This document shows, piece by piece, positions 17,299 through 60,144 of a DNA stretch of 64,000 nucleotides. The notes beneath the pieces are model-generated. The model did no database searches, was not told the origin of the DNA, and saw only the letters and a program-made list of their open reading frames with translations. The first letter of the stretch is position 1; every line of letters begins with the position of its first letter. Origin of the DNA: Trichosphaerium sp. ATCC 40318 (taxonomy: Eukaryota > Protista > Tubulinea); assembly GCA_038496445.1 (NCBI GenBank), contig JALMLS010000571.1, forward strand, positions 1 to 64,000, given 5' to 3'. The position numbers and the translations under genes are program-made.

Positions 17299-19771
17299 TT
17301 ACATTTTATTTTTGTTTTTTTTTGCTTGTTGGTGTTGTTTGCTGTACACCACTAGCGTCCATCCGTCATCTTCTTTGAATGCATCAGCGTCCCAAGGTGA
17401 AGAATTTTTAGATGTTTTTGTATTGTGGGTAGTAGTGGAGTTGGTTTTGGTGTTGTGAGAGGTAGTAGAGGATGGGTTAAAACTTTCAGTTTCAGGTGTT
17501 GTATTGGTGTATTCGTTATCTGGTTTCTTTTGTGTTGCTTTCTTCTCCTCCTGTTCTAGAGAGTATTGTGCAAGATTTTGTACATCTACGTGGTGTGATT
17601 TAGGAAAACGCGAACAATACAAAAAAATGCCAAAGAAAGAACTGTTTCGTGTGATTGAAGGCATACCTGCCAAGTTTTTAGAGGCTTTCTCTGTATCAAA
17701 ATCGGCGTGTTCAAGAGCAAGTAACACGATAGCAAGTTCTAATGTTGGAAACATGCTTCGTACAGACTGTACTTTAGCATAAATCTCATCATCATCGATG
17801 AGTGTCTACCGGAAAAAAATAAGAAAAAAAATTTCATAGGATTTCAAAGTAGTTGTTCGTACCTTAAGTTCGTCTTCGTAGTACCCAGATTGTTGTATAC
17901 CATCAGTAGGTAGTTTATAATAACCTTGGCTGTCATCCTCACCAGCGCGGAAAGAACTAACAGAGAGTGCTGAAGGAGCATAGCTAGATGAAAGAAACAT
18001 TTCTTCAACAGTAGCTTGGCTATTTACACTATGACTGCTACTACCTAGGCTAGAAACATCGCTTTCCTTAATAAAAATATAAGTAAAAACCCAGCGAGTT
18101 TAACTATGGAACAAGGAGTTTAAAATTAAACGCTTCAAAGCCTTTGATTCAGCAAAAAAAAAGAAAAAAGAAAAAATCAGACTTCTTTCGGACGTACATC
18201 GAAATAAACGTTGAATGGTTGAGAAGAATCAAGCTCATCGTAAAAGACGCATGATGCGCCCAAAGAACTTTGAGTAAATGATTCATCACCAGCTAAAGGT
18301 TTAATACGTAAGTAAAACCAAGGTAACACTAAAGTTAGACTTACAATCACGAATAATATCGCCGTCTTCAAAGAAAATATTATCAGCAGCCATTGATGCA
18401 GATACGTTGTATGGGTATTCATGTACATCCCCATAATCAACGTAATCGTATTCCTCATCACTGGATTCTTCAAAAACACCTGCAATGCCTAGTTCAGATC
18501 CAGATTCGAAAAGAATATCAGCTTCACTTTCGTCATCACTTTCTTGTTCTTCATCTGGTACTGTAACTAAACGAACTCACGTGAGTACTTCAAAATAAAA
18601 ATAATATTCTTTGTACATCTAGACTCTGTAGGGAATGTATCAGTGCCAATTGGGGTAGTAGAGGAGGTTGGTTCGAGAACAACCAAGCTGTTAACATCAG
18701 GAATATCATTAGCTTGAACTTCTTCAACATCTGGCTTGGCTGCTTCTGTAACCTCAGGAGTATCTTCTTGGAGAGATACTTCACAACCAAGGAATATCTT
18801 TAAGCTCTCTTCAGCGCGCTTGACTGTAAAAAAAAAGGAAGAGTTAGCGTAAAGATGAACTGAGTGTTGGTTTCGTTAGTACTTTTTTGGTTTTGCATGT
18901 TAAGTTTTGCATCACCGAATCCTTTGCTATCTTGAACAGTATCATAAAAGTTCTTATCCTTGCGGTACTTTTGACGACGTGGTCTTAGACTATTCACTCC
19001 ATCAAATAAACCGCCATAGCTCGTATTACCACCGACACCAATACCAGAATAGCCTGAGAAGAGAACATTAACAAATAAAACAGGGAAAGCGTCAAATCCG
19101 AACGGCGACGGTTTGTTTTTGTAGCTGACAAGTGATGGGTTTGAGTACGTACTGAATTCGTGACCATGGTCTTCTCGCATATAGAACTTTCCTCTGTACT
19201 TGGTTTTGTTAGCCAAACGTCTTGCCTTACGACGTAAGGCCTTGATCTTTCGTTTGGGGACATTCTTTGTCTTAAAGGACGTTAGTTTGTTTCACATTTG
19301 GGAGGAGAAGGCTCTACCTTGTGAGATCTGGCAGCAAGTTTTGTTGCTTTAGAAGGCTTTCTGGATGCTGCTGCAGCAGGAAACCGACGTCGGTTTACCC
19401 TTTTTTTGCAAGTTAGTTTTGTGAGTTCTTTTCGTTGTGGGGTTATTTCACCTGGAATAGTCGAGTTTCCATAGAACTGAATCGAGAGCGAAGCGGTGAA
19501 CTGTTTGTTTGCCTCTTTTCAAATAGGTCACAGTAGGATCGTTCCTCCAGCTGTACAATAAGCTAGAGTATTATTGGCAGTAACGTACGTTAACCAAACA
19601 TGGCTTTTAGTTACATGTTTTACAGTTGCCTCCTGAAAGCTCTTACCACCGATATAAATCAAAACATGGGAACCTGAACGTATTTTAAAAATAATTGGCC
19701 CTTATTTAACTATTACCTTCATGTACGTTTCTCTTTTGCTCTGCTATCCAATTCTTGTACCACTTGGACAT
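17299..19771 (-). CDS. Low-complexity protein with a C-terminal CUE-like ubiquitin-binding domain, multi-exon
   Basis: LQSMFP-type segment MFPTLELAIVLLALEHADFDTEKASKNL fits CUE (MFP...LL). Acidic and basic tracts. Possible Tudor-like N-terminal exon. Confidence 0.55.
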
Positions 19772-19977
19772 ACACCAGGTGTTGGAGATAAGAAACAATG
19801 AACAAACCAGTTACCCAAACTTCTGTTTTTTCAATCGGAGAGAAAACTCAAACTTTTAGTTCAACTAATACGGCTTGAAATACTGGGCGTCGGTTCTTGT
19901 GGTGCACACATTATCTAGCTTAATCTAGTGTATTTATACATTGATAAAAATGCGTACAAGTCTTGTTTTGACGCAAA

Positions 19978-21170
19978 ATGACCGAACAAGTGCCAAAAGC
20001 TTCGTCAATATAAGCAATGAGCACTGAAGGTATCGTATTTATGCTTCTTAATGGTTTCTTGTTAAACAACTACAAGATGACCTGTTGCCTGCCAATAACG
20101 AGGAATACGCCACCAAAGAATACTGGGACACGCGGTATCAAAAGTAAGGCAATTTTAAACAATATTTGTATTAAAAGGCGCTAGGGACAAAGGAACATAC
20201 GAGTGGTTCGTCATTGCACTCATCAGACGCCTCATTAGTACAATAGGTTTAATTCTGTGTCTGCCGAAGCTTTAAAAACAGTGGCAAAGCAAGTGAATGC
20301 CGGAGAATCAGTATTACATTGCGGTTGCGGCAATTCTGGGGCGTTAGTTTAACATCCGTGATGTCACTAACATTAAGTACAGAACTAGGCGTCCAACTAG
20401 CCTCTGCTGCTTCTTGTAAGGTAGAAAACATTGATTTTTCAGAAGTCGTTATACAATCAATGGCTAAAACATACGAGAAAGAAAAAAACGTCACATGCAA
20501 GTTTATTGCTTGATCATAACCTTTCTTTTCTCACTTATATATTTCAGGGTCTGTTCAGGATATTAAAAATATGAAGTACCCAGATAAGTCCTTTGATGTT
20601 GTACTAGATAAAGGAACAATGGATGCTCTGATGGTGCGGAATAATGTTTTTTTTTGACACTTACTGAATCCAAAAAATCATGAAGTCACAAACGTGTTTG
20701 GAAGTCTTGTTAATTTTTCTATGTAGTGTGAAAAAGGCGATGTTTGGCAAGTCCCTGAGGAGCTTGTTAAAGAAGTAACAAAGTACCTTGATGGTGTATA
20801 CAGAGTGCTCAAAGATGGTGGTAAATTCGTATATGTCACATTTGGTCAGGTAACATAAATAATAATTCATATTAGTATGAACAAAGTAGCTTAAGAAGCG
20901 CCACATAGCATGTCAATATTGACACTAAACGATCCTTATATACACATTTCATTTTTGCACTGTACTTTATCAAACACATGTGTTCTATGTGTCGTCTTTT
21001 ACAAGCGATTCTCGCTTTTTTTTTGTATTTTCCACTAATTATTTTTGTAGCCTCATTTCAGGAAACCCGTGATAATGCAAGAACAATATAAATGGAAGTT
21101 AGAGCTAATTACTCTTGGGAGCTTCTTTCATTACTATGTGTACATACTACAGAAACCTTCTTCGGCTTAA
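19978..21170 (+). CDS. EEF1AKMT4: eEF1A lysine methyltransferase 4-like (class I SAM methyltransferase)
   Basis: EYWDTRY, YEWF, LHCGCGNS, NIDFSEVVI, FDVVLDKGTMDAL, RVLKDGG, TFGQPHFR, FFHYYVY. Confidence 0.88.
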
Positions 21171-54996: not shown

Positions 54997-56331
54997 TTAA
55001 TCCTCGAAAACTATTTCTGGTGTTTCTTTTGGCTTTTCTAGAGATTTCAGAACATTCTCAGCAATCTTTTTATAACTTTTGGCACCTGTACAAGTAGTGT
55101 TAGCCAAGTTGATTTCACGTGCTTTTTTTTTGTACCGAGGGAATCAGATTCTGAAAAACTGAGAGGACAGCCCTCATCTGCACCTTTTCGTATGTTTGTG
55201 TCAATTGGTACATCTCCTAGTAATGGTACGTTCATCTTTTCTGCTAAATTCTTCGCGCCGTCTTGACCAAAAATGTGATAGATTTTATCATCTTCGCCTT
55301 TGAAATAGCTCATGTTTTCAACAACTCCAAGAACCTAACAAGGGTATCGTAAGGTTCTAGTTTGAATATCTATATGTATACTTACTGGTACTTTAACCTT
55401 TTCGAACATGTTAATACCTCTAACAACATCGGCGAGTGCTGCAGGTAAAGTTAATTTAAATCAATTAAAATAAAACGCACCAATTGATTGTGGTGTGCTC
55501 ACAATTACAGCTCCATCTAATGGTACACTTTGAGCGATGGTAAGCTGAGCATCACCTGTTCCAGGTGGCATATCTATCACAAGTACATCAAGCTCACCCC
55601 ATTCAACATCATTGAATAATTGTCTAATGGCTGAAATAACCTTTTTTGGAAGGAAAAACGTCAAAAGAAAAAATACTTGTTTCTGAAATATGATCGTACC
55701 ATCGGTCCACGCCATACTATAGCCGTTGCTTCTGATACCAAAAATCCCATAGACATACAGACAATACCATGGTTAGTGAGTGGCATGAGTTTCTTCTTAT
55801 CAGGATCAACAGACGCCAATTTTCCTCTGACATAAATCACTTAAAAAACCCCAACTTTTGACAGATTGTCATGCGTCGCACGTACTCCAAACCCATAGCT
55901 GTTGGTATAGACGGACCATAGATATCTGTAAGATGTTGTAAGCAGATAGCAGCGGCTTCGAAAGCGTTTTACATACCAGCATCGAGAATACCCACTTTCT
56001 TGCCTAGTTTAGTGAGCTCTGCCGCGACGTTGGTTGCCACAGTCGTTTTACCGACACCTCCTTTTCCTAAATGCGGTTATTTCGATAATTAACGGATACC
56101 CACACGCCAATTGCTTCAAAGGGTGTCTCAGATATTTGACATACCTGATGCTACGGCAATCATGTGTTTGACGCCTGGCACATTGAATTTAGGTACATTT
56201 GGACGCTGAGCGCCAGCGTTGAATCGCTTGATGCTTTTTGTGCTGGACTGAACGGAAAACCGCGTTCTGTGCACCTAAGTAGCTTAGAATCCTAATTTAG
56301 CAACAACACGTACTACAGCAGTTCGCAACAT
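54997..56331 (-). CDS. NUBPL: Mrp/NBP35-family P-loop NTPase, mitochondrial Ind1/NUBPL-like
   Basis: [68 protein letters not shown]; Arg-rich presequence. Confidence 0.88.
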
Positions 56332-56443
56332 GACTCCACAAGCAATATTACAACAGTATATTGTACTGGTTTTAAGTCAGAGTTGATTACTTGTTCATAT
56401 AAAATAAACTTAAATAGCACCTTGTGGCTTTCGGCAGTTTGGG

Positions 56444-59400
56444 ATGGAGAAAACCTGGACACAAACGTACTCTCTGGGAGCAGAAATACCTATCCAAATA
56501 GAGCTACTGCAGCCCTACAATATTGGAGAAACACTGTACAAGTCGTTCACAGTGATAGCCACAGATGAAACCTATGAGCTCTATAATAAGTACGTATAGC
56601 AATACGGGCTACCTAGCCTGGTTTGATAGATATGGTACACTAAAATTACCGGATAGCGTAAAAATGCTTCTCGAAACAGGTAAACGGCCCATTTACGCAG
56701 TTATAAGTACGTTGACGCCTTTACACGCAAAACTTGGGCAATGTAGCCAAAAAGTATTCAAAAAGCATCAATCTAATAAAACTAAGCAAAAATCGTTGCT
56801 CCTGAAGCGCCAGACCTCCATCCGTTCATTCAAATTCGCAAACTATACACAAGACGCGAAGTACGCAAACGCTTCAGGGGAAACTTCCACAAAGGTATTT
56901 ACGCCTCTTGATGCACTTCTTCGCTTTTTGGGTGCTTTTAGTAGAAATCACACGTGTCTGCTGTAGCATAGATACCATAAATTGATATATCACGTGGTGT
57001 TAATACGTATGTAGCTGGTTTCCACGAAAACGAACTATTCTTAAGTAAGTATTCTGACAGCACTCAATACCCTTTGGATTCAGTGGTTGACAAAATACTT
57101 CTCACAAAATACTCTGAGTATCAGGATCATTATGCAAGTTTCTTTGTAAGGAGGCAATGGGATAATACAAACAGAGTGATGGAAATGCTGGGTAATGACA
57201 TCGCTGGTTGGCCCAACGGTTTTGGACAACATGACGCTGCAGACGGAGATTTTAAAAGGGCTCAAGTAAGTCTCAATGCACAAGACGAAAATACTGATAT
57301 GCTATAGGCTGATGAAGCTTGTGTCGAAGAGAAAGACATTACACATGATAACACGGAGGATTTTAGTGACAGTCAACTTGGGATGCAATGGCAAACTCAA
57401 GAACTTGACACTCAGTCAAGTCAAAAAACAGCAATTGAAGAAAATGTATCTTCTTTGTTACCAGAAGCCATACCAGAAAGCATACCAGACTCCATCAAAC
57501 CTCTACAATCAATCATAAAGAGAGAAAATACTTTAAACTTACACATTGCATTGCCACTGACAACTACCGAAACTAATGCACTACCTCTTGCAACAAGTGC
57601 ATTAGTAAGAGTTGACACAAAAGTGTTAGATAAATCAAATGTGAAGATGGAGTCTCAAGGCAATCCGGTTAAAAGGAACAATTCAGATACACTAGATATG
57701 GTTGAAGTCAATGAGCAGCCTAAAAAAAAAAGAAGAAAGATTTGCACAGAAAAAACTGAAGTCATACTTATTGATGAAGACGAACAAGACACAAGTCCAG
57801 GTTTTGTTATATTGTCATTATTTGATGGTATTGCTGGAGCTCTAATGTCTCTTCTCAAAGCTAGAGTTAAGGCAAGTTCACTAAGACGTGGTTTCTCTCA
57901 GCTTGAGGTTGTTTTATCTAATTGTTTCTTGTTTTTGCAGATAAAGCATTACTACTATGCAGAAACTGATAAAACATGTGAGAACGTCATGGAAAATATA
58001 ATAAGCTTTGTTTGCAAGCACTAGTACGATTTACTTGTATGTAATTCAGGCAAACTTAATACCAAGTAGCGATTACAAAGAGAGTGATTTCACAAAAGTG
58101 CCAGCAAATGGAGATGTCTTACAAATTGTTAAAAAAACGCTTTCAACATTACATCACAAGATTGATATTGTGATTGCTTCACCTCCTTGTAAACACTTAT
58201 CATGTGCAGGCGTATGTAACAAATATTACTGGAAACGCAACACTCATAATCTTTTTTAGTCCAAGGAGCGTATGGACCATCAACCAACACGTGATAATTT
58301 CTTATATGCAAAACAAATTATTGATTGGATAAAACAAATAAATGGCAAACCACCTTACTTCATTGTCGAGAATGTAGCCAGCAGTACGTACTCAAGAAGT
58401 ATCATTCCCTACATTGACATTTCTGTTTAGTGGGGAAAGAGGCTAAAGATGCAATAAGTAACATATTGGAAGTGCCGCCATTGTGTATAGATGCAAAACA
58501 TTATGGACCTGGTAAAAGAAAACGGCTTTATTGGTGCAACTACATTATGCAGATTGACTCTCAGAAAAAAAGAGCTTTGAGTGTTGCAGACGTTTTATCT
58601 CAAGTACGTACAATAACAACACAACTTAATTTTTGTAAGTATAATCCTTGGATACCTTGCTTACTTTGTTTTCAGAATAAACAATTTCTCCTATCACAAA
58701 GTGCAAATTGTATCACAACTGCTAGTCATAGAAAATGGACATCAACAACACGAGAAGAGATACAAAGATCACCTGCAAAACACAAAAGAAACAATCCTGT
58801 AGTGGATCCTGACGGTAACTTGAGCCACCTGACAGTACTTGAAAAGGAGAGGTAATGGACAACTACTATAGCTATAATAATTTGCTTGTTTATTAACTGT
58901 ACAAAGGTTGATGGGATTCGACCAAGGATGGATTTCAGGGTTAATACCTAAGATTATCACGGAGATACAAGCACATAAGCTAATAGGTAAATCTTTCTCT
59001 TGTTTAGTTGTAGAGCATGTACTACATCGTTTCGCTGACGGTATGACTTTATTTATTGCACGTGTTTTCTTCAACAAACTAACAAATTAATCAAAGTTCA
59101 ACCGGCTCAAGAAGTATCACAAATCCGCACACTTAGGCAGACGACACTGTCTCATTTTATTGTTGATAACCCAGCAAAGGAACTTGATGGTTTTCTTCAA
59201 GTTTCTCAGAAGAGTACTAAAAAGAAGACACCGAAAAGAACATCTACACCTCGTAAAGCCCAGAAACAAAACAAAAGGAAGTTAACTGTAACTTCTTCAC
59301 AACGTCCAAAAAAGAAGAGAAAACAACAAAAAAAGAAAGTTACCCCGCCAGCCAAAAGCGCTTATAATCCATACGCAGCACGTGAAAGGATGAGAGTATG

Positions 59401-59582
59401 TGATGAAGTAAGGAAAGACATGGAGAACATTAACTGATGGTATAAACAAGCGAAATGTCAAGGAACCATTGGGATTGTGGTTGTCGTTGGTGAGCAAGGC
59501 GTATCAAACACAGCAGGCAAAGATTGCATGGTGTCTCAAGAATAGAGGAGTGATAGTTTACAAACGCAGAACTTACAACTAA
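56444..59582 (+). CDS. C5-cytosine DNA methyltransferase with DNMT3-like catalytic domain, N-terminal BAH-like domain and basic/HMG-like tail
   Basis: Motif I LSLFDGIAG, IV ASPPC, VI FIVENVAS, VIII KRKRLYWCN, CITT, IX/X EKERLMGF..GW and KLIGKSFS..VV.H. BAH-like NELFLS..D..PLDSVVDK..FFVRRQWD. Confidence 0.88.
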
Positions 59583-60144
59583 ATAAGCAGCTGCTTTGAC
59601 AGCATACAAAAGGGGGGCGTAATGCGGTGGTGAATATCACATTGGAAATGAAGAAACCTGAAAGTAAGAAAGGAAGAGTATTTAAGACATTTACAAACTG
59701 TTCAGAAACTTGCATAGCCACCCTTTTATTTTTTTTCAAAATTGTTCATACAATAAAAGCGAAGTTGAATCGTACCTCCGACTAGTAGTGATACTAATAT
59801 ACTATATAAATGAATTAGTTTAAACAGGAAGTGGATAGATTTGTGGAATTGACCCGGATTAATGCAAGGTTTTTGTAAAAAAAATCTCAAATGCGGTAAC
59901 AACATTGGTCCACTACGAAAACTGTAGATTACAAGGAAATTTGTACTGTGAGAAATGAAAGTATCTTTAACAAATTTTGGATAATCTGATGATAAATTTA
60001 GGTGCGCTACTGAAATAGGAGATTAAATAAAATCCGCGTCAAATTCCTCTTACAAAAGTTGTTCATTCCCAAGTAGGTGTTGAGGCTGAAAGGGGTTTCA
60101 AAAGAATCCAATCCACAAGTGGAAAATAACAGCTCGTGTTGGTC

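Follow-up and report, generated by a model that had tools for sequence, protein, structure and literature searches.

A twelve-exon gene of the amoeba Trichosphaerium that probably joins a BAH-type domain to a DNMT3-like cytosine methyltransferase core

We analysed a stretch of 64,000 nucleotides (nt) from the amoeba Trichosphaerium sp. ATCC 40318 (contig JALMLS010000571.1, positions 1 to 64,000 of the forward strand), here called the window, and in it a locus that an initial annotation had read as a cytosine methyltransferase preceded by a BAH domain. We consider it probable that the locus is a single nuclear gene, with 12 exons, that encodes a DNA cytosine-C5 methyltransferase, and that a BAH-type domain at the N-terminus would tether its DNMT3-like core to chromatin. 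Tracing of donors and acceptors, with a scripted check of each exon, gives a spliced frame of 2301 nt and 766 codons on the plus strand from 56444 to 59437. None of the 12 exons contains an internal stop, all seven split codons are sense codons, and the 11 introns are 40-120 nt long, ten of them with GT-AG ends and one with GC-AG ends. Three-frame translation of 56300-59800, read together with the DNA, reveals a region of eukaryotic type, with brief open stretches and small introns between them. The predicted protein consists of a BAH-like N-terminus (exons 1-4), a linker with a KKKRRK cluster, a C5-cytosine methyltransferase core (exons 5-11) and a lysine-rich tail (exon 12), in this order. 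Every string quoted in the initial annotation lies on the plus strand where it had been placed: the BAH-like strings in exons 1-4, LSLFDGI in exon 5, ASPPC in exon 7, ENVAS in exon 8, CIDAKHYGPGKRKRLYWCN in exon 9, CITT in exon 10, RLMGF and LIGKSFS in exon 11, and PPAKSAYNPYAARER in exon 12. The gene start that it gave, 56444, is also that of the predicted frame, but its end at 59582 is too far downstream, since the frame stops at a TGA at 59435-59437.

The genome contains a second copy of the gene. When the exon 9-10 reading frame was searched against the organism's 70-Mb assembly, one paralog came up, on the minus strand of contig C233 at about 17350-20350, and searches with exon-9 and exon-8 profiles found no third family member in the genome, so that the family consists of two copies. 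The paralog is intact and has the same 12-part layout, with 23-54 % identity overall (23-30 % for the BAH part, 42-54 % for the exons of the core). Its parts follow in the order BAH-like exons, linker with KKKKKRRK, motif I, PPC, ENV, motif VIII exon, AITT exon, motifs IX-X and a Lys/Pro-rich tail. The introns of the two copies agree in position and phase, and codons are split alike after exons 1, 2, 3 and 6. The BAH part is connected with the remaining protein across intron 4 (57266-57307; 42 nt, phase 0, GTAAGT..TAG), and the paralog likewise has a 42-nt phase-0 GT-AG intron between BAH and linker, with the following exon starting with Ala in both. Left unspliced, this intron leads to a stop in both copies. 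Loci so diverged would keep the frame across the junction only if the two parts are spliced into one message, and we therefore take the BAH and methylase exons to form one predicted gene, for which the paralog argues.

The searches of Pfam, the PDB and our own profiles described below used single exons or exon pieces. In the window gene the methylase motifs FDGIAG, PPC, ENV, RxR, RLMGF and GKSFS are present in canonical order, and the catalytic residues (FDGxxG, PPC, ENV, RxR, GF and GKxFS) are all kept in both copies. The exons of both copies are strictly collinear with a methylase profile of 305 positions, built from 60 stand-alone C5 methylases, and the summed per-exon scores reach ~100 bits for the window gene and ~80 bits for the paralog. 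This collinear match of exons to profile is far beyond chance. Motif I (FVILSLFDGIAGAL) is found in exon 5 (57308-57871) and matches profile positions 6-23; the donor of this exon is the GCAAGT at 57872, and use of an alternative GT donor at 57866 would remove two codons. Exon 6 (57941-58023), with IKHYYYAETD.. and the motif II/III region, matches positions 28-45 and is 48 % identical to the paralog, which also keeps the TA/T codon split at its GTACGA donor. Motif IV with the catalytic cysteine (IDIVIASPPCKHLSCAG) lies in exon 7 (58067-58211), which is 54 % identical to the paralog and matches positions 44-83. In scans of single exons, this PC exon matches PF00145 with an E-value of 0.001 and 18.9 bits, and that of the paralog with 20.2 bits, against a cut-off of 22 bits. 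Exon 8 (58260-58383) contributes motif VI as PYFIVENVAS (ENV at positions 108-120), exon 9 (58431-58603) the motif VIII region (IDAKHYGPGKRKRLYWCN; positions 123-178), and exon 11 (58907-59040) motifs IX and X as RLMGFDQGW and LIGKSFSCLVV (positions 258-294, 17.5 bits). Between motifs VIII and IX there are about 80 residues, a short target-recognition region that includes exon 10 (58676-58851; ANCITTASHRKW..), which is 31 % identical to the paralog (AITTGNYLKW there) and has no similarity to the profile of stand-alone methylases. Judged by these motifs, the core is a complete predicted C5-cytosine methyltransferase with the catalytic PC cysteine kept.

Exon 9 is the most DNMT3-like part of the core. 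A profile made from the exon-9 sequences of both copies was compared with 177,635 distinct PDB sequences and matched DNMT3A (E 2e-6), DNMT3B (2e-5) and DNMT3C (2.6e-5) with 25-31 bits, followed by DRM2 (0.5). No chain of DNMT1, ZMET2, another DNMT1-type enzyme, HhaI or HaeIII was matched in this set at E<=10. Fifteen of the 38 residues that HMMER aligns between exon 9 and human DNMT3A are identical, and the genome's own DNMT1-type gene is not matched by the exon 9-10 frame. Motif IV reads PPCKHLS and motif VIII reads GKRKRLYW. These features support a core that would be of the DNMT3 rather than the DNMT1 type. We set a DNMT1-type reading aside: the core has neither PCQ nor QxRxR, its target-recognition region is ~80 residues long, no DNMT1-type chain was matched, and the RFD matches of the genome lie on other contigs. 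We likewise rejected a DRM reading. Because the motif order is canonical, running from I to X, the core is DNMT3-like and not DRM-like, and no exon matched UBA. The Pfam scan of all exon pieces gave no match to PWWP, ADD or PHD at E<=1. By sequence, the core would thus belong to a DNMT3-like super-group that takes in viral and prokaryotic stand-alone enzymes.

One apparent likeness to DNMT3A did not survive the comparison with the paralog. The 72 nt at 58604-58675 are in frame and free of stops, and when read through they add 24 residues starting with VRTITT, which we take to be identical to a string of DNMT3A. The stretch has GTACGT..CAG ends and is assigned as intron 9 because the paralog carries an intron at the same site, after the same '...ILSQ'. 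With the position conserved in this way, we regard the likeness as coincidence; an isoform that retains intron 9 is possible.

The N-terminus is probably a BAH domain. Its sequence is spread over four exons, of which the first three are too short to reach a score on their own, so that exon 4 alone can be scored. In exon 4 (57015-57265, 83 residues; HENELFLS..PLDSVVDKILL..FFVRRQWD), which covers the C-terminal half of the domain, PF01426 is the sole Pfam family matched, with E-values of 0.007-0.017, 15.5-16.6 bits and alignment to profile positions 54/58-118 of 121. In the paralog's exon 4, 23 % identical to that of the window, PF01426 is again the sole family (E 0.11-0.12, 12.8 bits, positions 83-116). 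The E-values allow for 24,736 families; taken for BAH alone, a family named in advance, they equal a p at or below about 1e-6. The five blocks usual in BAH domains can be made out by eye, in the right order, in both copies. Exon 1 (56444-56589) contains the start codon and the first block, LYKSFTV..ETYELYN; the paralog begins at the homologous Met (30 % identity over 44 residues), and the GTACGT donor at 56590 has the same phase as the paralog's GTACGT. The next block reads GKRPIYAVI in exon 2 (56630-56706) and GRRPIFGVI in the paralog, followed in both by an identical phase-1 GTACGT donor. Exon 3 (56808-56894), whose acceptor site is a choice that we infer, has PFIQIRKLYTRRE at the place where the 'vrWfyRpee' strand falls, and the paralog has PYVKIRKMYTTDQ and a phase-1 donor alike. 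The initial annotation is partly supported, in its two central points, a core of DNMT3 rather than DNMT1 type that keeps the catalytic PC and an upstream BAH domain that both paralogs independently make probable in the matching part of the profile, below threshold; the two sets of exons are also predicted to lie in one frame that the diverged paralog conserves.

That this putative BAH domain reads a histone mark is less secure than its identity. The Trp of the 'RWFY' strand is part of the aromatic methyl-lysine cage in ORC1, ZMET2 and BAHCC1. At this place the window gene has IRKLY and the paralog IRKMY, with Leu or Met instead of the Trp. An aromatic residue is retained in PIYAVI and PIFGVI. 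The domain may instead contact nucleosomes in a different manner.

The linker encoded by exon 5 is acidic and rich in Ser and Thr, and is not conserved between the copies except for a KRxNSDTL(D/E)..V island (57670-57700) and the basic KKKRRK cluster, a likely nuclear localisation signal. After motif X, both copies have the motif L(K/R)Q(D/T)TLS(Q/H)(W/F)(V/I)(I/V), which reads LRQTTLSHFIV at the beginning of exon 12 (59097-59437) and LKQDTLSQWVI in the paralog. A Lys/Arg-rich tail follows up to the TGA stop in the window gene, and a K/P-rich tail in the paralog. The island and the post-motif-X motif are candidate docking motifs. A degenerate HMG box, which the initial annotation had seen in the tail, was discarded: exon 12 matches no Pfam family at E<=1, the HMG box included, and at E<=10 gives only a meaningless Ndc1_Nup match. 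The tail is lysine-rich and of low complexity.

Several results weigh against a BAH-tethered enzyme with a DNMT3-like core. Splice junctions and expression are predictions from genomic sequence. The BAH matches are sub-threshold (15-17 bits in the window gene and 13 bits in the paralog, against a cut-off of 30.8) and cover half a domain. A two-sequence profile of exon 4 matched no BAH protein in the PDB, and a search of the ESM Atlas (protein language model) with exon 4 returned only low-score clusters of bacterial carbohydrate-binding proteins. Within the core, exon 9 alone discriminates among methylase families; the PC, ENV and motif IX-X exons gave no significant PDB match, either singly or as two-sequence profiles. 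An exhaustive search of 1.84 billion (1.84e9) representative sequences with the exon 9-10 reading frame found no eukaryotic DNMT3 at E<1e-3. The exon-9 profile scores 43.5 bits with P0003 and 40.3 bits with P0002, the two real matches of that search, compared to 31 bits with DNMT3A, and it also matches a Clostridia genome (43 % identity) and one phage-like metagenome contig.

The last of these results bear on the origin of the core. A possible, though clearly less favoured, explanation of the same fused gene is that its core came from a giant virus or a bacterium as an 'orphan' DNMT, which then gained introns, was duplicated and became fused to a host BAH domain. The exhaustive search gave three matches, of which one (P0001) is a spurious repeat protein and the other two, P0002 (286 aa, metagenomic and unplaced) and P0003 (326 aa, of a giant-virus-type family), are the sole true matches among the 1.84 billion representatives. 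Both are compact stand-alone proteins that score 36-37 bits with the exon-9/10 frame, and neither is a full-length relative. The P0003 family consists of proteins with PF00145 only. P0008, a relative 64 % identical to P0003, adjoins a D5-type primase-helicase; their contig is compact, its genes are mostly unknown, and it is probably that of a giant virus. This locus (L012, 6001-10156 on a Logan contig of SRR21722017) encodes a primase-helicase of 1031 residues with DUF5906 and Pox_D5. Together with the Clostridia match, these relatives favour acquisition, as does the occurrence of orphan DNMTs of viral origin in amoebae (PMC12344493). The higher score of P0003 over DNMT3A is biased, however, because P0002 and P0003 were picked as the best out of 1.8 billion sequences and DNMT3A is just a mammalian example. 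The PDB match is specific to DNMT3A/B/C and includes neither HaeIII nor HhaI; the best solved-structure match of P0003 itself is DNMT3A, narrowly before M.HaeIII. The exon-9 profile found no match in the viral contigs searched and no second eukaryotic locus. No giant-virus genes adjoin the gene, and its eleven introns, its host-like GC content and the two old paralogs with common intron positions speak for a long stay in the host under either origin. The core may be either a vertical eukaryotic DNMT3 or a long-resident acquired orphan; by its sequence it would in either case be DNMT3-like.

It is improbable that the N-terminal exons are separate from the methylase protein, as in two adjacent genes, or that they lack a BAH fold. 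Retention of intron 4 would place a stop after exon 4, an ATG at 57383 could begin a methylase-only product, and the doubt is fed by the sub-threshold BAH matches and by a junction predicted from genomic DNA. Yet the two parts are only 42 nt apart, separated by a canonical phase-0 GT-AG intron, and the paralog retains both the 42-nt intron and the continuity of the frame despite 23-30 % identity in the BAH part, with BAH as the sole Pfam family matched in both copies.

Still less probable is a protein that does not work as a DNA methyltransferase, either as a DNMT3L-like regulatory subunit or as an RNA methyltransferase like DNMT2 or DNMT6. DNMT family membership alone does not fix the substrate (PMC12344493), which leaves room for such a function. 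However, the PPC Cys, the ENV Glu, RxR and the S-adenosylmethionine-binding motif I are intact in both paralogs, and DNA or chromatin as the substrate would suit the putative chromatin domain, nuclear localisation signal and basic tail. RNA-directed DNMTs are, moreover, consistently without companion domains (PMC12344493).

A divergent BAH-bearing member of the DNMT1 superfamily, like DIM-2, CMT or DnmtX, that has lost its RFD and shortened its target-recognition domain is very improbable, for although that superfamily is characterised by a BAH domain placed before the methylase and the de novo enzyme DnmtX is exactly 'BAH + Dnmt' (10.1101/149385), the exon-9 profile ranks DNMT3A/B/C without any DNMT1-type chain, the PCQ and QxRxR forms absent here are those shown by another methylase of the genome (on contig C59, below), the organism's own DNMT1-type gene is unmatched by exons 9-10, and the exhaustive search returned no fungal DnmtX at E<1e-3.

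The predicted protein shares features with several known systems. Like animal DNMT3A/3B/3C, it would place an N-terminal chromatin module before a C-terminal catalytic core that has the PC..LS form of motif IV, ENVxxM, a short target-recognition region and the canonical motif order, and these enzymes are the sole significant solved-structure match of the motif VIII exon (E 2e-6 to 1e-4). In contrast to them, it has no PWWP or ADD match and carries a BAH-like domain instead, plus a Lys-rich C-terminal tail. Plant DRM2, the second and weak structural match (E 0.5), belongs to the same DNMT3/DRM super-group but has rearranged motifs and UBA, whereas the amoeba gene is canonical and without a UBA match. 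DNMT3-like cores also occur in unicellular eukaryotes, Acanthamoeba and Dracoamoeba among them, as the DNMT3s of protists and algae and the orphan DNMTs (de Mendoza lab 2025; Hoguin 2023). One survey reports no companion domain for either the DNMT3s of protists or orphan DNMTs (PMC12344493), and a survey of marine microeukaryotes reports none for DNMT3s (PMC9998398); it is by these published descriptions that the BAH-like domain sets the present gene apart. The stand-alone giant-virus and bacterial C5 methylases (P0003 family, P0002 and L014) are the nearest sequences found and themselves have DNMT3A as their best solved match, but they are proteins of 290-400 aa with PF00145 only, lacking BAH, linker and tail, and their target-recognition exon is dissimilar.

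Enzymes that do have a BAH domain N-terminal to a C5 methylase, and that act de novo or are guided by chromatin, are DnmtX of Tremellales, described as a de novo enzyme, DIM-2 and CMT/ZMET2. BAH has been described in DNMT1, CMT and DIM-2 only (PMC12344493), and BAH1 of DIM-2 reads H3K9me3 (PMC13297926). DIM-2 and CMT belong to the DNMT1 superfamily, unlike the DNMT3-like core of the amoeba protein. For DnmtX, which had no counterpart among the matches above, we found no class of catalytic core stated. ChloroDNMT of green algae is a further non-DNMT1 lineage that independently gained a chromatin reader, but its reader is PWWP and its lineage a different one. A BAH domain on a DNMT3-like core therefore appears to be undescribed. 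The suggestion in the initial annotation of an undescribed pathway stands in this respect and falls in another: BAH-guided de novo methylation is already known as a principle from DIM-2, CMT and DnmtX, so that the advance lies in architecture and lineage, not in concept.

The gene is flanked by ordinary host genes and lies outside any repeat or viral island. Its upstream neighbour, at 55461-56000 on the minus strand, has the look of a P-loop ATPase of the Mrp/NBP35 type; it is transcribed divergently and lies ~450 nt from the methylase start codon. The organism has at least four C5-methylase genes. Besides the two paralogs, these include a DNMT1-type gene (C7:645518-649049, minus strand) with two BAH matches upstream of its methylase exons, and a further C5 methylase of the PPCQ/QRR type (C59:71478-71633). 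DNMT1-RFD (PF12047) matches with equal scores are found at C28:224374-224541 and C340:31452-31619, neither of them beside a methylase match; the two contigs may be duplicates or haplotypes of each other, or the matches may belong to an RFD-bearing gene that is not DNMT1.

The base composition of the window shows some further features. The overall CpG observed/expected ratio in positions 1-64000 is 0.86. Relative to expectation, CCGG (0.35), TCGA (0.57) and CCGA/TCGG (~0.5) are low, ACGT, GCGC and ACGC/GCGT reach 1.2-1.3, and CACGTG occurs 6 times as often as expected. This pattern of CpG contexts might reflect flank-specific methylation with deamination, or selection for CACGTG. Five of the 11 donors of the gene (56590, 56707, 58024, 58384 and 58604) read GTACG(T/A), and GTACGT occurs in the window 2.6 times as often as expected; the consensus of the extended donor seems to include a CpG.

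If the gene is read as we propose, KKKRRK would carry the protein into the nucleus, the BAH domain, in which the usual cage tryptophan is absent, would dock on nucleosomes, and the basic tail would add affinity for DNA. The enzyme would deposit 5-methylcytosine de novo, probably at CpG, and DNMT1-type enzymes would then maintain it.

De novo methylases are targeted through PWWP/ADD in animals and through UBA and RNA-directed DNA methylation (RdDM) in plants. An extended scenario, which we regard as unlikely, is that a giant-virus-related core was captured by the amoeba, fused to BAH and duplicated, and now serves a lineage-specific, chromatin-guided de novo methylation that would be a third independent aiming route after PWWP/ADD and UBA and may silence endogenised viral DNA; the link to silencing of viral DNA is speculation. 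If the more modest reading of a BAH-tethered DNMT3-like enzyme is true, its presence in two old copies beside DNMT1-type enzymes would mean that targeting evolved independently with a different reader. It also suggests that surveys based on Pfam thresholds may overlook divergent companion domains, and the gene pair would offer an entry point to the targeting of methylation in amoebae.

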